Virus record (IMG/VR): IMGVR_UViG_3300031669_000001
Span: 186,001 to 250,000 of that record
Strand: one strand, 5' to 3'
DNA: 64,000 bases
In this document: in pieces, positions 4,362 to 46,011 of the stretch
How the letters are laid out: every line of letters begins with the position of its first letter
Position numbering within the stretch: the stretch's first letter is position 1
Program-made: the position numbers and the translations under genes
The notes under the pieces: generated by a model
What the model was told of the DNA's origin: nothing
What the model saw: only the letters and a program-made list of their open reading frames with translations
The model's database searches: none

Positions 4362-7163
4362 TTACTCCTCGTCAAAATTCAGTAGCTTGTTAACAACTAC
4401 CGTGTGTTCAGTTGGGACTTCCCAACCAATCGGTTCAAAGATGTTGCTGATCTTCTTGTCGATCAACTTTAACTCTGTGAGTCGAACATCAATCTCAAAA
4501 TTGTCAGTGAACCACTTTGGCAGTTCTTCTGTGTCAGAGTCGAACGCCATGCTTTTGAAGTCGTGTTCATTCTTCTTGAGCCACACGATCTTAATCTTTG
4601 ATCCAGAGATTATCTGACGAGTGTTCTGATCACCAAACATCTCAATGCATAAGTTATGGTTGATTGCTGGACGGACGTTGCCTGGAAGCTTTGCGTTTCC
4701 AAATCCAGGCTTCTCGATGCGCAACCACTTCTCATAGTAGTCTTCAAGGTTCTTGACAGAGGTTGTTGTCGCATAATCCAACGGCTTGACGTCATCCTTG
4801 TTGAAGTTTCTGCGGAATTCTATGATCTCATCATTGATCTTCTTCTTCGGTTTTTCTGTCAAGACATCCAACAGAACCTTCTTCAGCATTGTACGAATAG
4901 CTTCTGGAGTTGAGGAGATCTTGATGTCACTACCTTGAGACTTGAGCGCCTTCTTGTCATCGACGTCAATCTTAACTCCTTCAATGTCCTTCGCCAACAG
5001 GATGTACTTCTTCTTGGCGCTGAAGATACCTGCCGAAGCTACAATTTCACGGTTTGCCTTGATGAGAGTATCAAAACCTGGCTGACAGAAGAAGGCTTCA
5101 CGAACGAATGGTGCAAAGGATTCATTGACAGCCGCAGCGATCGCGTCAGCGCATTGAATTGCATCCTCGACGTTATCTTTGACTAGCTGTTCCATCACGA
5201 AGTAACAGCTATCAGTATCAGAGTAGATAGGACCGATGCCATGTGGAACATCCAACGTGTAAGCATTTTCAAATTCTCGCTTGCTGTTTTTAGTTTGCTT
5301 TGCCTTCGTTACTGTCTTGACAAGCTTAGGAGCACCTTCACCCATCAGATTGACCGCTACGGTATTGATCATGTGCGTGGTGATTTGACGACCAGAACCT
5401 GTTGTCGATGCACCAAGTCTTGGATCGTGGAACCTACAGAATTCATTCAAGGTTGCACCGTAAGTAGAGTTCAACAGAACTTTACGAACACCTTGCAACA
5501 TGTCGTAATACTCTGAAAGATCGCTGAGCCTTATGTACTCAGGATCTGTCTTGTCACCACAGACTTCCAGCCTTTCTGCAGCCATCTTGGCGTGCTTCTT
5601 CTTGAGGCCTTGCAGTTCCTTACGACCGTTGAACCAGTAGGTCAAGACCGCTGGGATAAGTCCTTCACCATTACCTTGATCAAGGATGGTGCCGTAAGCT
5701 GTAAGAGCGTACTTGTTATCCTTCAGGAAGTTGATCATATTTCCAGCGGTGATCTGAAGACCTGCATCTACAGGTTCTCCATCCTCGTCTAGAGGGTTGG
5801 TTCCTTCTGGAATGATCGTCACAGTTGCGTTCTGGGCTTCTTCATCCTCAGGGTGGAGGTTTGCGTAGTAGACTCTCTTCCAACCTTCCTCATACTCTTC
5901 AAGCTGTCCAACGATCTTTTCAGGTGACAGGTTTAACGTCCGGTACGTACTGGGGTACAGGGATGCCAAGTCAATAGATCCTATCATCTTGTGCAAGCCG
6001 ATCTTCGGTGTCATCACCAGAGCACCCTCTACGTACGATGAAGGCTTATGTGTCTTATCAAAGACAATTTCATTGCGGATTGAATGACTAAAGTTTATGA
6101 TAGCTGTATCGATCAGCTGCACCGAACCAAAGATGGCGGAGAAGTTTACCGTCGCCTCATGGACCATGGTGTTGGCAAGCTGAATGTACTTGAACTTCTT
6201 GTCGAGATCCAAGATACAGGTAACGTCGTGTCTATTGTACTTTAGGAAGTGGATGAAGTCATTGCGGTAGAGCTCGTAGAGGGTGCCTTCATAGTGCAGC
6301 TTAGGGACGTCTAACTCTTCTTCAGTGATAGCTGCTAGAGAGAATGATTGACGACCACCGAGGGTGAATTTCTTGAAGAGACCCATGTAATCGAGGTGGA
6401 CTCTGCTGAGAAGATCGATGACGATTTCCTTTTCCTTCGAACCCTTGAAGCGAAACTTTTCACCCCATCTAGGAGTAGGACCACCTTCAAAAGCTAGGTG
6501 GCGAAGTGCATGCTTACCAAATAAAAGTTCGATCCTCTTCGCGATGTACGGCATATCAAAGAATTCAGAGTTCCAACCTGACAGAATATCAATGTCTTGA
6601 ATGAGATCAATGAACGTTTGTAGAAGCTCTCGCTCACTGTTAAACAACCAATAGTTGTCATCGTGCATATCTTGAGGAAGAAGCGCACTTATTGGAATTC
6701 CAGCTTCCTTAGCGTTATTGATCCAGGTTTCTGGAGGAAGAGCTAAAGTGAAGTATGCTTTGACGGCGGTGTTGTAGACCGTGATCGCATTGATAGGCGC
6801 ATAGGGATTTGAGGCTCTAGGCCAACCAATTGCTGGATCGTAATCAACTTCTATATCCAAGAATCCGACTGAAACTACTGGGATCTTCTTCCCAAAGTAG
6901 CTCATCATAACCTTCTCTTGAGGGTGAAGATCGCTCTCGAATCGCTTTGGATGAGAACGACAGCCTGCGTCAAACTCACTTCTAGAGCTGAACTCCAGAA
7001 GCTTTAGCTTTTCACCTGTGATCGCCTTGAATGTTCCTTCTTCATCAGGAACGTAGAAATTGTATGGACTGTCGTATTCGCGCAGGTTGCGCTTGCCTGA
7101 TTCGGTCTTTTCCCAAACGAGAACCTTATCACGCCCACGTTCGTGGTATGAGGATATAAACAA
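4362..7163 (-). CDS. family B DNA polymerase (gp43-like), TTG start
   Basis: Exo motifs DIEVD, GWN..FD, YN..D; polymerase motifs DLASLYPS, K..LNS.YG, YSDTDS, KKKY. Confidence 0.97.
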   Translation of the reverse strand: MFISSYHERGRDKVLVWEKTESGKRNLREYDSPYNFYVPDEEGTFKAITGEKLKLLEFSSRSEFDAGCRSHPKRFESDLHPQEKVMMSYFGKKIPVVSVGFLDIEVDYDPAIGWPRASNPYAPINAITVYNTAVKAYFTLALPPETWINNAKEAGIPISALLPQDMHDDNYWLFNSERELLQTFIDLIQDIDILSGWNSEFFDMPYIAKRIELLFGKHALRHLAFEGGPTPRWGEKFRFKGSKEKEIVIDLLSRVHLDYMGLFKKFTLGGRQSFSLAAITEEELDVPKLHYEGTLYELYRNDFIHFLKYNRHDVTCILDLDKKFKYIQLANTMVHEATVNFSAIFGSVQLIDTAIINFSHSIRNEIVFDKTHKPSSYVEGALVMTPKIGLHKMIGSIDLASLYPSTYRTLNLSPEKIVGQLEEYEEGWKRVYYANLHPEDEEAQNATVTIIPEGTNPLDEDGEPVDAGLQITAGNMINFLKDNKYALTAYGTILDQGNGEGLIPAVLTYWFNGRKELQGLKKKHAKMAAERLEVCGDKTDPEYIRLSDLSEYYDMLQGVRKVLLNSTYGATLNEFCRFHDPRLGASTTGSGRQITTHMINTVAVNLMGEGAPKLVKTVTKAKQTKNSKREFENAYTLDVPHGIGPIYSDTDSCYFVMEQLVKDNVEDAIQCADAIAAAVNESFAPFVREAFFCQPGFDTLIKANREIVASAGIFSAKKKYILLAKDIEGVKIDVDDKKALKSQGSDIKISSTPEAIRTMLKKVLLDVLTEKPKKKINDEIIEFRRNFNKDDVKPLDYATTTSVKNLEDYYEKWLRIEKPGFGNAKLPGNVRPAINHNLCIEMFGDQNTRQIISGSKIKIVWLKKNEHDFKSMAFDSDTEELPKWFTDNFEIDVRLTELKLIDKKISNIFEPIGWEVPTEHTVVVNKLLNFDEE

Positions 7164-16916: not shown

Positions 16917-16992
16917 TGGTCGCCCTGGAGGGATTCGAACCCTCGATCGCGATTTTAGAGATCGCAGCTTTACCGCTAAGCATTACAAGGCG
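16917..16992 (-). tRNA. amber suppressor tRNA (anticodon CTA)
   Basis: Acceptor CGCCTTG/CAGGGCG-A-CCA, anticodon arm GCGAT-CTCTAAA-ATCGC, T arm GAGGG-TTCGAAT-CCCTC. Confidence 0.88.
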
Positions 16993-36393: not shown

Positions 36394-36468
36394 TGGTGCA
36401 ATATGTTGGAATCGAACCAACCTTCCTGCAGTGTAGGTGCAGACGACAGCCACTCTCTTCAATATTGC
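36394..36468 (-). tRNA. tRNA-Val(TAC), C33
   Basis: CTGCA-CCTACAC-TGCAG, CCA. Confidence 0.75.
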
Positions 36469-36471
36469 GTG

Positions 36472-37196
36472 TGGTGCCCTCGGACGAGAATCGAACTGTC
36501 GACCTAATTGCCTTATCATTCGGCTAACGGTGCAATATATTCTTTATTGATTTGATTCAATGAGACTATTTTCAAATCAACACTGTTCTGTAATATAACT
36601 AATTCTATTTTCCTCGCATCAATCTTGGCAAGATAATCATTTTTCGTATCAAAATATTTGTCTCCAACTTTAAAATCAGGATAATATTTATGATCTATTC
36701 CATTATCGTCTATCCAAGGTAGCGGTGCAGGTCGTTCCCATATAATATTCAATTCTTCTAGAATCTGAGCAAATTTAATTTCATAAGAACTCTGAAGATA
36801 CACCTCAGTCCCGTCATTTTTCCTAAAATATAATTTCAGTTTAGATGTATGTCCACCTAAACCATTAGCTTTAGCTTTCTTAGATAAGTTGGCTTTAGAT
36901 TCATTTGTATGTATAGTACGCGTATGACCTTTTAACTTCTTACTACTTGCAAGACCATATTTAGTAACACGAGGGTCAGATTTATCTAATCCTTTATTCC
37001 ATGCTGACTTACCAGTCATACCATTTGTATACTTACGATCTGGGTTATCTTTGCATAGTCTTTCATGATTCCGTTGTGAATTAGTATTTTTACTCTCTTT
37101 ATTACAAAATTTACAAAATAGCATAAGTTTTCTCCTTAATACTATTTATAAATTATTTCTCAAAGTGAATTGCTCTACCGACTGAGCTACAAGGGC
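36472..37196 (-). pseudogene. tRNA (probably Thr) split by an endonuclease gene
   Basis: 5' half GCCCTTG-TA-GCTC..GAGC at about 37165-37196; 3' half T arm-CGAGGGC-A-CCA at 36472-36510. Confidence 0.75.
36516..37124 (-). CDS. putative homing endonuclease (zinc finger + PD-(D/E)xK domain)
   Basis: CxxC..H...C, AWNKG repeat, S.YE, YYPDF, DTK; TATAAATA upstream. Confidence 0.75.
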   Translation of the reverse strand: MLFCKFCNKESKNTNSQRNHERLCKDNPDRKYTNGMTGKSAWNKGLDKSDPRVTKYGLASSKKLKGHTRTIHTNESKANLSKKAKANGLGGHTSKLKLYFRKNDGTEVYLQSSYEIKFAQILEELNIIWERPAPLPWIDDNGIDHKYYPDFKVGDKYFDTKNDYLAKIDARKIELVILQNSVDLKIVSLNQINKEYIAPLAE

Positions 37197-38277: not shown

Positions 38278-38772
38278 CTATTTCTTTCTTGATACCTTCT
38301 TAACTCCACCGTCTGTGAAGATCAACTTGTGACCTTTTGCAAGGTTACAAGGTTGACACATAGTCTGCATATTGTCAACAGAGTTTGCTCCACCGTGATA
38401 CTTAGGCAGACGATGATCTGCATTCATCAAGATTTCCTTGCCATCTTCGTTGATGGCGTAGAGATTCATGATGACAGGTTTTCCAGGCTCAGCATCGTTA
38501 ATTTCAACAGCGAAGAATGAGCCTTCAATTCCACAACAACGACACTTTGTACCGTGAATCAAGAAAGTTCTCAGCTTGACGTTGTGAACGTTGATCAAGG
38601 TGTTGAACGCTTCCATCTCAACAGAAGGTGAGCTGCTATGAGGGAGTGAATCAATTTCTTTCATCGCGTCCAAGACACCGTCAACAGACAGGATTCCTAA
38701 CCGACGAAAGTTACGATGCTTCGCGACTAAAAAGTCGTCCATGAAAGAAGAGATTTTTGATATGTTCAACAT
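38278..38772 (-). CDS. HNH endonuclease family protein
   Basis: CxCC, DH..P...GG.N...N.Q..C..CN..K; start uncertain. Confidence 0.8.
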   Translation of the reverse strand: MLNISKISSFMDDFLVAKHRNFRRLGILSVDGVLDAMKEIDSLPHSSSPSVEMEAFNTLINVHNVKLRTFLIHGTKCRCCGIEGSFFAVEINDAEPGKPVIMNLYAINEDGKEILMNADHRLPKYHGGANSVDNMQTMCQPCNLAKGHKLIFTDGGVKKVSRKK

Positions 38773-38881
38773 TTGAGTAATTATATCACTGTTCATGTTG
38801 AAAGTAAACACAATTTGGTAGTACTCCACGGTTACGATCCGTGCCGTTGCAGCCCATCTGACCACTCTCCAGAGGATATGT

Positions 38882-38981
38882 TGGTAGTCCCGCTCGGACT
38901 CGAACCGAGAATGTGCGCTAATCTGGCGCCACAGAGTGCCACTTTATAAGGGTGGTGTTTTACCAATTAAACTACAGGACC
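38882..38981 (-). tRNA. tRNA-Ile(TAT) with long variable arm
   Basis: GGTCCTG/CGGGACT, loop CTTATAA, CCA. Confidence 0.8.
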
Positions 38982-39634
38982 AGTAATTCTATAAATTCTT
39001 CATTGATTAAGTCATTTGAAAGAACAACCACTTTGATGTTGTTCATTTTCATTGCAGATTTAATCTTTCGTTCATCTTTCTTGATCAGATAATCATTTTT
39101 TGGATCAAGAAAGATGTTTTGTTTTGGTAAATAAAAGTCTGGTATATATCTTCGTTTCTTACCGTTATCGTTCCAAATATATCCTTGTCGAACTTTAATC
39201 CACTCAATATTAAGTGAGTCTAAAATTTCAGCAACTCTAACCTCGTATGAAGACTCCAAAATTACTCCAGGCTTATACTCGACGTTCTTAGAATACTTTG
39301 AATGTTTTGTTAACCGTTTGCAAGCAATGATTGAAAGTTTTTCCTTCGTTTCTTCACAATGTGGATGGGAAAATATATAACCCTCTTTTTCCATTTGCCT
39401 TTTTCTTTCATTTCCCCTTGCGCCTGCTATTCTTTGCTGTTCTGGATTATGAGATCTACTTTTATGACCAGCGCATCCTTGAGATGACGAAAATTCCTTA
39501 GAGCAAATTTCACATACCCATTTTGTTTTCTTCTCTACTTGTCCCTTACATACAGCAACATGCTTGTTAAAATTAGGAACACTAATTTGCCGAGAACATT
39601 TAGGGCAATCTTTTTTCTGTTTAGAACCGTGCAT
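38972..39634 (-). CDS. putative homing endonuclease (C2H2 zinc fingers + PD-(D/E)xK)
   Basis: CPKC..H...C, CEIC...H....H, SSYE, YIPDF, DPKNDY. Confidence 0.75.
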   Translation of the reverse strand: MHGSKQKKDCPKCSRQISVPNFNKHVAVCKGQVEKKTKWVCEICSKEFSSSQGCAGHKSRSHNPEQQRIAGARGNERKRQMEKEGYIFSHPHCEETKEKLSIIACKRLTKHSKYSKNVEYKPGVILESSYEVRVAEILDSLNIEWIKVRQGYIWNDNGKKRRYIPDFYLPKQNIFLDPKNDYLIKKDERKIKSAMKMNNIKVVVLSNDLINEEFIELLVL

Positions 39635-39902
39635 AATACAAAGATCCCGCCGCTCACCAAAGCTGAGTACTAACGTTATTTCTTCTGCGCATTTTCTCGA
39701 GATTGTCGTAAAGCATTAAATCTCGGAAAAGTATTAATGCTGGAACTGGAAGATTTCAGCGTTTCATTCAATAACGCGTTCTCTTCCTCTCGTGTGAAAG
39801 GTTTACCTTTCATATATGCTTCTTCTTTAGTTGTGAATTTCATTGGGTAATCTCCTTAAAGATGAATAATATCATCCTTTTTGAGATAAGTACATTATTC
39901 TC

Positions 39903-39982: not shown

Positions 39983-40058
39983 TGGCAGGAGGTGTGAGAA
40001 TCGAACTCGACTAACCTTGCTTCAAAGGCAAGTATGCATACCATTGCATATACCTCCA
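39983..40058 (-). tRNA. tRNA-Gln(TTG)
   Basis: Loop CTTTGAA, G73, CCA. Confidence 0.75.
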
Positions 40059-40247
40059 ACATTCATTTGTGTTCTGGTCGTAACTCCAGCAGCTGATATT
40101 AGCCTCAATCTCCTGTTCCACGCTTCCAGCTTGCAAACCTTTCACGCTTCGACCTCAGAGGCACATGCCATGTTCTATAACGCTTCATTCGCGACTTCCA
40201 CGTTACGTCAGCCAGACATTCGATAACTTGCACTTGCTACACAAATT

Positions 40248-40321
40248 TGGCAGCCCCCGCTGGAATCGAACCAGCGTCTTCGGAGTCAGAGTCCGACACC
40301 CTACCATTAGACCAGGGGGCA
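40248..40321 (-). tRNA. tRNA-Gln(CTG)
   Basis: Loop CTCTGAC, CCA. Confidence 0.85.
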
Positions 40322-41316: not shown

Positions 41317-41390
41317 TGGTCCTTTCTGCAAGAATCGGACTTGCATCTATCGATTATCGGTCGATTGCTCTACCACTGAGCTAAGAAAGG
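41317..41390 (-). tRNA. tRNA-Ile(GAT), C33
   Basis: Loop CCGATAA, CCA. Confidence 0.8.
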
Positions 41391-41630: not shown

Positions 41631-41704
41631 TGGTAGTCCCGGTCGGAATCGAACCGACGTGTTTCGCTAATCGGGCGAACACCTTACCATTAGATGACAG
41701 GACT
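41631..41704 (-). tRNA. tRNA-Ile(GAT), C33/U37
   Basis: Loop CCGATTA, CCA. Confidence 0.75.
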
Positions 41705-43499: not shown

Positions 43500-43591
43500 G
43501 GGTGGGACTGGTGGGATTCGAACCCACGATGTGAGCTTTCGCATGTACCGGATTAAAAGTCCGGTGTCTTCAACCTCTTGACTACAGACCC
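43500..43591 (-). tRNA. tRNA-Lys(TTT) with long variable arm
   Basis: Loop CTTTTAA, about 20-nt variable region. Confidence 0.78.
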
Positions 43592-43681
43592 ATTAAACAG
43601 CTTTGGAATCAGAGGTTGATTTACCAAAGCCATGGGTAGAAAATCGTTCCATGGCACATACTCCTTTTGTTGAAATTAAAT

Positions 43682-45131: not shown

Positions 45132-45206
45132 TGGTACACCTGCAGGGAATCGAACCCTGTATTCCAGCTTGAAGGGCTGGCCACTCAACCAATTGTATTC
45201 AGGTGT
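45132..45206 (-). tRNA. tRNA-Glu(TTC), C33
   Basis: Loop CCTTCAA, CCA. Confidence 0.8.
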
Positions 45207-45917: not shown

Positions 45918-46011
45918 TGGCTCCCCCAGCAGGATTCGAACCTGCATACCGTTCGCGACGGACTACGAGTGGTTAACAGCCACTTCACTTGCCAGTTATG
46001 TGTACGGGGGA
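45918..46011 (-). tRNA. tRNA-Asn(GTT) with long variable arm
   Basis: Loop CTGTTAA, variable hairpin CCGT/ACGG, CCA. Confidence 0.8.

Follow-up and report, generated by a model that had tools for sequence, protein, structure and literature searches.

Free-standing homing endonucleases are known residents of phage tRNA arrays. One of the closest described systems is SegB of T4/T6, a GIY-YIG homing endonuclease encoded in the tRNA gene cluster (PMC2330249; PMC13096335), which cuts within tRNA genes of phages that lack it and drags neighbouring tRNA genes along. SegB has a late promoter and a hairpin that sequesters its RBS (PMC2988022), and SegB homologues are statistically associated with tRNAs, although without preference for one tRNA isotype. 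A second group comprises mobE in the nrdA gene of Aeromonas phage Aeh1, described as "genes in pieces" (cited in PMC2988022), and the "fractured genes" with split inteins (PMC2677866), where a free-standing endonuclease gene is inserted inside a host gene without an intron, and both pieces stay functional through subunit assembly or trans protein splicing. Homing endonucleases that land inside genes are thought to need a self-splicing intron or intein, or a protein that tolerates being split, to avoid killing their host. Here, we analysed a 64,000-nucleotide stretch (the window) of a 345-kb phage genome, in which an endonuclease gene fused to a complete tRNA gene lies inside the anticodon of another tRNA gene. 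Our literature searches found no description of an endonuclease-split phage tRNA.

The features of the region, all on the minus strand, are as follows:

39641..39671, minus strand: outer 5' half of the split tRNA(TAT) (type B), with the acceptor 5' strand AGTACTC, A, the D arm GCTT-TGGT-GAGC, GG, the anticodon-stem 5' strand C-GGGAT and the loop C32-T33-T34.
38880..39640, minus strand: the inserted cassette of 761 nt, consisting of a 6-nt leader, the endonuclease ORF, the complete tRNA(TAT) and 2 nt (AC), between T34 and A35 of the target.
38972..39634, minus strand: homing-type endonuclease ORF of 220 aa (ATG at 39634, TAG at 38974-38972), with two Cys/His zinc fingers, a helical linker (HxEETKxxLS) and a C-terminal PD-(D/E)XK nuclease domain (E127, P165-D166, D177-x-K179).
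38882..38981, minus strand: inner, complete long-variable-arm tRNA with anticodon TAT (type A) and encoded CCA, whose U8-A9-G10 (38974-38972) is the stop codon of the ORF.
38816..38879, minus strand: outer 3' half of the split tRNA, with A35-T36-A37, a damaged anticodon-stem 3' strand (T CCTCT), GGAGAG, the variable arm TGGTC-AGATG-GGCTG, the T arm CACGG-ATCGTAA-CCGTG, the acceptor strand GAGTACT and ACCA.
38278..38796, minus strand: a neighbouring free-standing HNH endonuclease ORF (172 aa from the ATG at 38796), immediately 3' of the split tRNA.
36472..37196, minus strand: a second, independent endonuclease-split tRNA, 1.7 kb away.

The two outer halves belong to one tRNA. Their acceptor strands AGTACTC/GAGTACT pair 7/7, and the 31 + 64 nt add up to the family length of 95 nt, so the insertion is clean. 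The halves match the intact alleles at loci L046 and L069 (L numbers denote loci in our set) at 82/95 without gaps, 26/31 in the 5' half and 56/64 in the 3' half, and the anticodon of the join is TAT. The 5' half shares the exact 17-mer CAGCTTTGGTGAGCGGC with the intact alleles L045, L046, L069 and L101, and a covariance model built from 58 intact relatives hits the 3' half at 51.6 bits (E 1.8e-11). The halves keep every family-invariant column outside the junction. The observation of the earlier note, which described this locus as tRNA halves enclosing an endonuclease ORF and a complete divergent tRNA, is confirmed, with one correction: the GGGAT/ATCCT pairing it gave for the anticodon stem is 5/5 only in a register shifted by 2 nt from that of the family, and in the family register the anticodon stem has 4 of 6 pairs.

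The inner tRNA is recognised by the Rfam tRNA model RF00005 at 54.9 bits (E 6e-11; gathering score 29), with a 25-nt extra variable arm. In 16 endonuclease-linked homologues, 15 of 19 predicted pairs show compensatory changes. ARAGORN without its intron mode misses this tRNA; in intron mode it does not find the split tRNA and misreads the inner one as Tyr(ata) with an 11-nt intron, and lowering its threshold on all possible joins gave uninformative calls. The genome has no other tRNA(TAT). The endonuclease ORF is intact and matches phrog_15137 "endonuclease" (1e-11) and phrog_9019 "Holliday junction resolvase" (3e-7), and the PD-(D/E)XK signature residues are invariant in 15 homologues. Its AF2 model (pLDDT 84) gives only weak fold matches to Vsr, Bax1, PvuRts1I and T7 endo I (best E 3.5e-3, TM 0.27-0.28), and a sequence search of the PDB recognises only the zinc fingers. 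The ORF is under purifying selection (pN 0.11-0.21 against pS 0.67-0.89), while synonymous sites are saturated.

The earlier note also inferred an intron-less mobile element that destroys its target tRNA and complements it in cis, an interpretation that would fail if relatives lacked an intact version or if the halves were spliced together. Neither refutes it. Intact versions exist: exact-word scans of IMG/VR with 21-22-nt pieces of either half found nothing, but a degenerate intact-allele pattern gave 92 matches, all carrying the anticodon loop CTTATAA, and ARAGORN calls the closest ones tRNA-Ile(tat) of 95 nt. Across 58 distinct sequences, 17 of 27 pairs covary; the covariation supports a 7/5 acceptor/T configuration, and an 8/4 or 9/3 "allo-tRNA" architecture was rejected. 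An uninterrupted near-identical allele appears in another metagenome (run X4), where a wastewater contig joins 38872 to 39647 through 13 nt that restore the anticodon arm GGTGT-TTTATAA-ACACT. Synteny of the flanks with any intact-allele locus was sought and not found, so no true empty site in the same genome backbone is available. GenBank phages hold no close relative of the region, of the intact target tRNA or of the endonuclease, the best protein identity being about 30%.

There is likewise no sign of splicing. No Rfam intron match was found at E<10 in 38780-39720, although the search does detect a group I intron elsewhere (locus L005, 4543-4728), and the insert leaves no room for a ribozyme: non-coding, non-tRNA sequence totals 8 nt, with 6 nt before the ATG and 2 nt after the inner CCA. 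Contigs of an RNA library cover both junctions unspliced. The exact join is not recognised as a tRNA by ARAGORN, and its energy in the family structure is -23.4 against -32.8 kcal/mol. In relatives, the outer 3' half is decayed (L004, L126), truncated to begin in the variable loop (L015, L020/21) or absent (L127, L128, L014, L031). We also considered whether the outer 5' half pairs with the 3' end of the inner tRNA, but this reaches 6/7 acceptor pairs in L014 and only 4/7 in L031, and the anticodon stems do not match.

The endonuclease and tRNA form a conserved unit that occurs in about 20 metagenomic phage loci. In 12 of the metagenomic/viral loci fetched with the endonuclease, and in 4 closer relatives, the endonuclease stop codon lies in U8-A9-G10 of a tRNA(TAT). 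Mobility is supported by a recurrent site: the 5' junction, CTT followed by TGTAT(A/T)AATA, comes after five different anticodon-stem strands (GGGAT, GGTGT, GGTGC, GAAAC, TGGAT) and different acceptors, and six loci (window, L126, L004, L015, L020/21 and L026) have outer acceptor strands that pair 7/7 with different sequences. Some loci (L130, L018/19, L032) have endonuclease and tRNA with no tRNA halves, so not every copy documents an insertion into a tRNA. The pairing is also not obligate, as the inner-type tRNA is a common phage tRNA and 0 of 114 such tRNAs in IMG/VR have the endonuclease upstream. Degenerate endonuclease copies occur, L024 being interrupted where L018 is intact and L020/21 and L017 being frameshifted or fused, as expected of the life cycle of a homing-endonuclease gene.

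In relatives, expression looks T4-like: a TATAAATA late-promoter-like box sits in the loop of a hairpin that partly sequesters the SD. The window copy has lost this 22-nt leader, whose promoter and SD are seen in L126 and L127; it therefore depends on read-through transcription and may be poorly expressed or inactive. The tRNA array carries further endonuclease genes. The adjacent HNH ORF (PF01844, 2.9e-7; several HNH PHROGs) is not part of the cassette. In the second split tRNA, a paralogous endonuclease (37124..36516, 202 aa; 38% identity over the nuclease domain, E 4e-14) with a TATAAATA + AAGGAG leader splits a tRNA-Ile(GAT)-like gene. The 5' half (37196..37163) ends in ATTCA-CTT at the junction, the 3' half (36518..36472) begins TGATAA, whose TGA is the stop codon of the ORF, and the acceptor pairing GCCCTTG/CGAGGGC is 7/7; no inner tRNA is present.

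Taken together, we consider that the region is a free-standing homing-endonuclease cassette, with a probability of roughly 0.8. We propose the following cycle, in which cleavage, its specificity, immunity and gene conversion are inferred. In a mixed infection, the enzyme cuts the uninterrupted tRNA(UAU) gene of a phage that lacks the cassette, at or near the anticodon, and the break is repaired from the cassette-bearing genome, with the outer tRNA halves serving as homology arms; where the target resembles the inner tRNA, the 3' part of the inner tRNA serves instead. The endonuclease gene plus the spare tRNA would therefore be copied into the target, destroying the gene and removing the cut site, while AUA decoding is kept by the tRNA that travels with the enzyme, so no RNA splicing is needed. 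It should be noted that the inner tRNA has the same CTTATAA loop as the target, which leaves the basis of its immunity unexplained. After insertion, the outer halves would be neutral and decay, each new invasion supplying fresh ones; the well-preserved tRNA halves in the window beside saturated synonymous sites in the endonuclease fit recent re-invasion.

Other explanations are less likely. First, the arrangement may be a static scar, in which endonuclease-stimulated or illegitimate recombination between neighbouring paralogous tRNA(UAU) genes once nested one inside the other, followed by vertical inheritance, resembling the SegB-driven segmental duplications of tRNA-Tyr in T6. Endonucleases in phage tRNA arrays are known to drive local duplications (PMC13096335), the window copy has lost its leader, and both tRNA types are common phage tRNAs. 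However, the junction is the same to the nucleotide in alleles that differ in both the acceptor and the anticodon stem, and in both tRNA types, and the halves remain close to the intact-family consensus while endonuclease synonymous sites are saturated between lineages, which is hard to reconcile with a single ancient scar. No flanking synteny is shared among the loci. We regard this reading as unlikely.

Second, and still more doubtful, the split tRNA may be functional. The insert could be removed, or processing of the inner tRNA by RNase P and 3' maturation enzymes could release the halves, which would pair through the 7-bp acceptor stem and be sealed by the phage's tRNA-repair ligase, giving two tRNA(UAU) species. 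This would make it the first split tRNA gene in a bacterial virus, rejoined by a repair rather than a splicing pathway. A linked idea is that RNase P cleavage would leave the endonuclease mRNA without a stop codon, tying endonuclease dosage to tRNA processing. The conserved positions and perfect acceptor pairing of the halves, the presence of the region in an RNA library, and a T4 Rnl1-type RNA ligase (PF09511, 85.8 bits) and Rnl2-type ligases in the genome are compatible with this. However, the precise join has 2 of 6 anticodon-stem pairs broken and A38 changed to T; in L126, the closest relative with both halves, the 3' strand does not pair with the 5' strand at all; L015 and L020/21 lack the anticodon 3' strand altogether; no joined contig was found among the contigs of the RNA run; and no processing site is known that would generate ends at positions 34/35. 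A Nanoarchaeum-type split tRNA, with both halves conserved wherever the split occurs, is not supported, considering that most relatives have a truncated, decayed or absent 3' half. Finally, chance resemblance or an assembly chimera is excluded for practical purposes, since the same junctions occur in an independent 1,148-nt contig (L012) and, with 0 differences, in a 226-kb DNA contig at depth 193, and homologous arrangements occur in more than 5 other loci.

If our reading is right, this family provides a third solution for an RNA gene, namely to carry a complete spare copy of the gene being destroyed. It would be a compact natural "cut, replace and immunise" cassette of about 760 bp, with a defined 95-nt tRNA gene with hundreds of natural alleles as its target, and an experimentally tractable system, with a small enzyme and a small target, for studying how free-standing endonucleases choose and spread between alleles. 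It would also help to explain why phage tRNA arrays contain tRNA halves and pseudo-tRNAs.

Like SegB, the endonuclease described here is free-standing and embedded in a phage tRNA array; however, SegB belongs to a different nuclease family, sits between tRNA genes without splitting one, and is not fused to a tRNA. As in mobE and the fractured genes, an endonuclease gene lies inside another gene without an intron and leaves two pieces; here, however, the pieces appear to be dead and a whole replacement gene is supplied in cis. [quoted passage not shown] The phage tRNAs have a 7/5 configuration, not 8/4 or 9/3, and form two large, unannotated families in uncultivated phages, with at least 92 and at least 120 IMG/VR matches.

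The window belongs to a 345,069-bp IMG/VR virus record with direct terminal repeats, covering bases 186001-250000 of it. The genome carries at least 52 tRNA genes in two clusters, and 42 of them lie in the window, all on the minus strand. TATAAATA, which corresponds to the T4 late-promoter consensus (PMC2988022), occurs 5 times in the window, always on the minus strand, whereas shuffled sequences give 1.2 on average and none of 100 shuffles reaches 5. Reading the minus strand, the region is organized as follows:

39671..39641, minus strand: tRNA 5' half, AGTACTC-A-GCTT/TGGT/GAGC-GG-C-GGGAT-CTT.
39640..38880, minus strand: the 761-nt insertion.
39634 (ATG, six nucleotides after the 5' half) to 38974-38972 (TAG), minus strand: ORF of 220 codons.
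38981..38882, minus strand: complete tRNA with anticodon TAT, a 25-nt extra variable arm and an encoded CCA; its U8-A9-G10 is the TAG of the ORF.
38879..38816, minus strand, two nucleotides (AC) after the complete tRNA: tRNA 3' half, ATA-T-CCTCT-GGAGAG, variable arm, CACGG-ATCGTAA-CCGTG, GAGTACT-ACCA.
38278-38796, minus strand: HNH endonuclease ORF directly following the split tRNA.
36472-37196, minus strand: a second endonuclease-split tRNA.

The acceptor strands of the two halves pair 7/7. The inner tRNA scores 54.9 bits on the Rfam tRNA model, although ARAGORN misses it by default. No Rfam family other than the inner tRNA matches the 941 bases searched at E<1, and no intron model appears even at E<10. 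The tRNA callers also disagree elsewhere in the array: Rfam finds tRNAs at 41634-41704 and 45135-45206 that ARAGORN omits, and the tRNA-Val(tac) that ARAGORN places at 36394-36468 has no Rfam match at E<=1; the array probably holds more degenerate or atypical tRNAs. ARAGORN further reports a tRNA with anticodon CTA (labelled Pyl) at 16917-16992 on the minus strand, a potential amber suppressor, which raises the question whether TAG is reassigned in part of the genes of this phage. The endonuclease ORF has no internal TAG, and read-through of its stop would add only 3 codons.

The two halves belong to a real tRNA family, of which intact alleles exist. A degenerate pattern taken from the 5' half plus an intact CTTATA loop finds 92 places in IMG/VR (L034-L125, the target type), all of which are 95-nt tRNA-like genes with the loop CTTATAA. 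Fifty-eight distinct sequences give a consensus cloverleaf with a 7-bp acceptor, a 1-nt linker, a 4-bp D stem with loop TGGT, a 5(+1)-bp anticodon stem, a 6-bp variable-arm stem with loop AGATG and a 5-bp T stem; 17 of 27 pairs show compensatory changes. ARAGORN calls the closest members, the intact alleles L046 and L069, tRNA-Ile(tat), and a covariance model of the family scores the 3' half in the window at 51.6 bits, E 1.8e-11. The halves are 31 + 64 = 95 nt, exactly the family length, and align without gaps to L046 and L069 at 82/95. The 761 nt are therefore a clean insertion between T34 and A35, and the reconstructed anticodon is TAT, as the earlier note had predicted. Independently, a contig from a wastewater run (X4; 406 nt, depth 36) joins 38872 to 39647 through 13 nt, which restore the anticodon arm GGTGT-TTTATAA-ACACT; this is an uninterrupted allele nearly identical to the halves in the window. 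The genome itself has no other member of this family and no other tRNA(TAT).

The target type and the inner type (L141-L260) form two large, apparently unannotated families of long-variable-arm tRNA(UAU) in uncultivated phages, with at least 92 and at least 120 IMG/VR matches, which share conserved variable-loop motifs (AGATG / AGATTAG / AGATAAT). The target type has an unusual core, with the 1-nt acceptor-D linker, a 4-nt D loop and an extended anticodon stem. Nematode nev-tRNA(UAU) and bacterial allo-tRNA(UAU) are precedents for non-Ile charging. Long variable arms are normally restricted to Leu, Ser, Tyr and Sec; however, other tRNAs with class-I anticodons carry them here, namely Lys(ttt) of 93 nt (43500-43592) and Asn(gtt) of 94 nt (45918-46011) in the window, and Asn, Thr and Lys in related loci (L004 1778-1864 and 2834-2919; L007 3746-3829).

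The ORF has two Cys/His fingers, supported by weak Pfam C2H2 hits and by PDB zinc-finger hits. Its C-terminal domain matches phrog_15137 'endonuclease' (1e-11) and phrog_9019 'Holliday junction resolvase'. Fifteen homologues keep E127, P165-D166 and D177-x-K179 invariant, which is a PD-(D/E)XK signature, and an AF2 model (pLDDT 84) gives weak Foldseek matches to the PD-(D/E)XK enzymes Bax1, Vsr, PvuRts1I and T7 endonuclease I. The family is large, with 418 proteins at E<=1e-5, none of which is named. Between lineages pN is 0.11-0.21 and pS is 0.67-0.89, so the ORF is under purifying selection and synonymous sites are saturated.

Two paralogues are present in the same genome. The first (202 aa, 37124..36516, 38% identical in the nuclease domain), with a TATAAATA + AAGGAG leader, accounts for the second split tRNA, as it sits between a tRNA 5' half ending in ATTCA-CTT and a 3' half starting TGATAA, whose TGA is the stop of the ORF. 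There the acceptor pairs 7/7, the T arm is imperfect and there is no replacement tRNA in cis, while an intact tRNA-Ile(gat) lies at 41317-41390. Together with the HNH gene, the two PD-(D/E)XK genes make three endonuclease genes within 3.4 kb of tRNA array. The second, more distant paralogue (201 aa, 27% identity) lies outside the window in the second tRNA cluster of the genome (Leu/Ser/Tyr/Trp; G000:C1:318324-318929), with a CATAAATAG + AGGAG leader and no obvious tRNA half upstream.

The endonuclease and tRNA are conserved as a unit that recurs at one site. Loci encoding homologues (45-84% identity) were fetched from IMG/VR, JGI/ENA metagenomes and Logan assemblies. In L004, L007, L014, L015, L018, L019, L024, L025, L026, L029, L031, L032, L126, L127, L128 and L130, the stop codon again lies in U8-A9-G10 of a long-variable-arm tRNA(TAT), and it is TAG in all but L032, where it is TAA. 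These inner tRNAs covary strongly, with compensatory changes at 15 of 19 predicted pairs. Upstream of the ORF, most loci carry a tRNA 5' half that stops after (C/A/T)T(T/C), mostly CTT; some are of the type found in the window (L014, L015, L016/17, L020/21, L031, L004, L126, L127, L128), and others are of the inner type (L005, L007, L026, L029). In the window, L126, L127, L128 and L020/21, the junction reads CTT, then TGTAT(A/T)AATA, following five different anticodon-stem strands (GGGAT, GGTGT, GGTGC, GAAAC, TGGAT) and different acceptors; all of these stem strands except GAAAC are also seen among the intact alleles. Six loci also keep an outer 3' piece, the acceptor strand of which pairs 7/7 with the outer 5' half, each time with a different sequence: AGTACTC/GAGTACT, GGTCCTC/GGGGACT, GCTCCCA/TGGGAGT, GCTCCTC/GAGGAGT, CCTCGAT/ATCGAGG and GCGCTTG/CAGGCGC. 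This is the signature of repeated insertion of one element into different alleles of one target site. In L005/L006 (3620-3737), the endonuclease ORF ends in a 5' tRNA remnant (CTGTAGTTTAACAGTAAC), followed by an uninterrupted target-type tRNA(TAT) that neither ARAGORN nor Rfam reports, and a bona fide group I intron (Rfam 61.4 bits; 4543-4728) lies 0.9 kb downstream in another gene.

The halves appear to be relics. In L126 the anticodon 3' strand no longer pairs, and in L004 the T stem has a bulge and CCA has become CTA. In L015 (1010-1056) and L020 (995-1040; = L021) the 3' piece starts only in the variable loop and is fused directly to the inner CCA (ACCA, then GATGGG or GATTAG), suggesting deletion through the CCAGAT microhomology shared by the CCA end and the variable loop. 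L127, L128, L014 and L031 have no 3' piece, and L130, L018/19 and L032 have no halves at all. In the window, the exact join has only 4 of 6 anticodon-stem pairs in the family register, and A38 is T; the GGGAT/ATCCT pairing described in the earlier note is 5/5 only in a register shifted by 2 nt. ARAGORN finds no tRNA in the join, and its energy in the family structure is -23.4 kcal/mol, against -32.8 for L046. The damaged 3' strand (ATAT-CCTCT) resembles the GGAGA/ACTCT alleles more than the partner of GGGAT, which we infer to reflect co-conversion of the 3' flank from a donor. Outside the junction, the halves in the window retain every family-invariant column, although endonuclease synonymous sites are saturated between lineages; this fits young halves and re-invasion of fresh alleles by each lineage.

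Between the 5' half and the ATG, relatives carry an ATAAATA/TATAAATA box and an AGGAG Shine-Dalgarno (SD) sequence. A hairpin pairs the C-CUU of the tRNA plus the start of the insert with the SD region, and the promoter-like box lies in its loop, with Z-scores from -0.5 to -4.2. This is the arrangement described for I-TevI/II/III, segB and mobE (PMC2988022). The window copy lacks these 22 nt; it is intact as an ORF, but it depends on read-through transcription and has no recognisable SD. An RNA library from a related sample contains contigs across both junctions in unspliced form and shows uneven depth along the region, although DNA carry-over cannot be excluded and these observations rest on contigs only. 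In the RNA run X2, the depth jumps to 69-138 at 40046-40313, against 1-20 for the neighbouring bins, and a contig there goes back 184 with 65 nt between, suggesting a repeated or highly expressed small RNA around the tRNA-Gln genes.

Taken together, the observation made in the earlier note is confirmed, and its interpretation as an intron-less mobile element that destroys its target tRNA and complements it in cis is supported with a probability of about 0.8, with enzyme activity, target immunity and gene conversion being inferred. The cassette idea needs refinement. The inner-type tRNA is itself a very common phage tRNA, and the intact target-type loci likewise almost never have it nearby; the endonuclease is therefore a minority passenger of two abundant tRNA(UAU) families. 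We propose that, when the target resembles the inner tRNA, the 3' part of the inner tRNA itself can serve as the right homology arm, which leaves only a 5' half behind, and that a dissimilar target, as in the window, requires both outer halves. It remains possible, though unlikely, that the halves are rejoined, for example by the Rnl1-type ligase of the phage.

The association of free-standing endonucleases with phage tRNA clusters is known for GIY-YIG SegB (PMC2330249; PMC13096335). Insertion of a free-standing endonuclease gene inside a gene without an intron is known for mobE/nrdA and for 'fractured genes'. Insertions in the tRNA anticodon loop probably also occur as group I introns, one of which may encode a PD-(D/E)XK enzyme. 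In our literature searches, we found no description of the combination seen here, a PD-(D/E)XK/zinc-finger endonuclease whose ORF ends inside a tRNA, inserted intron-free at 34/35 of a tRNA gene and carrying a complete replacement tRNA. We therefore consider that intronless homing is the known part of this system, and that this combination is what is new.
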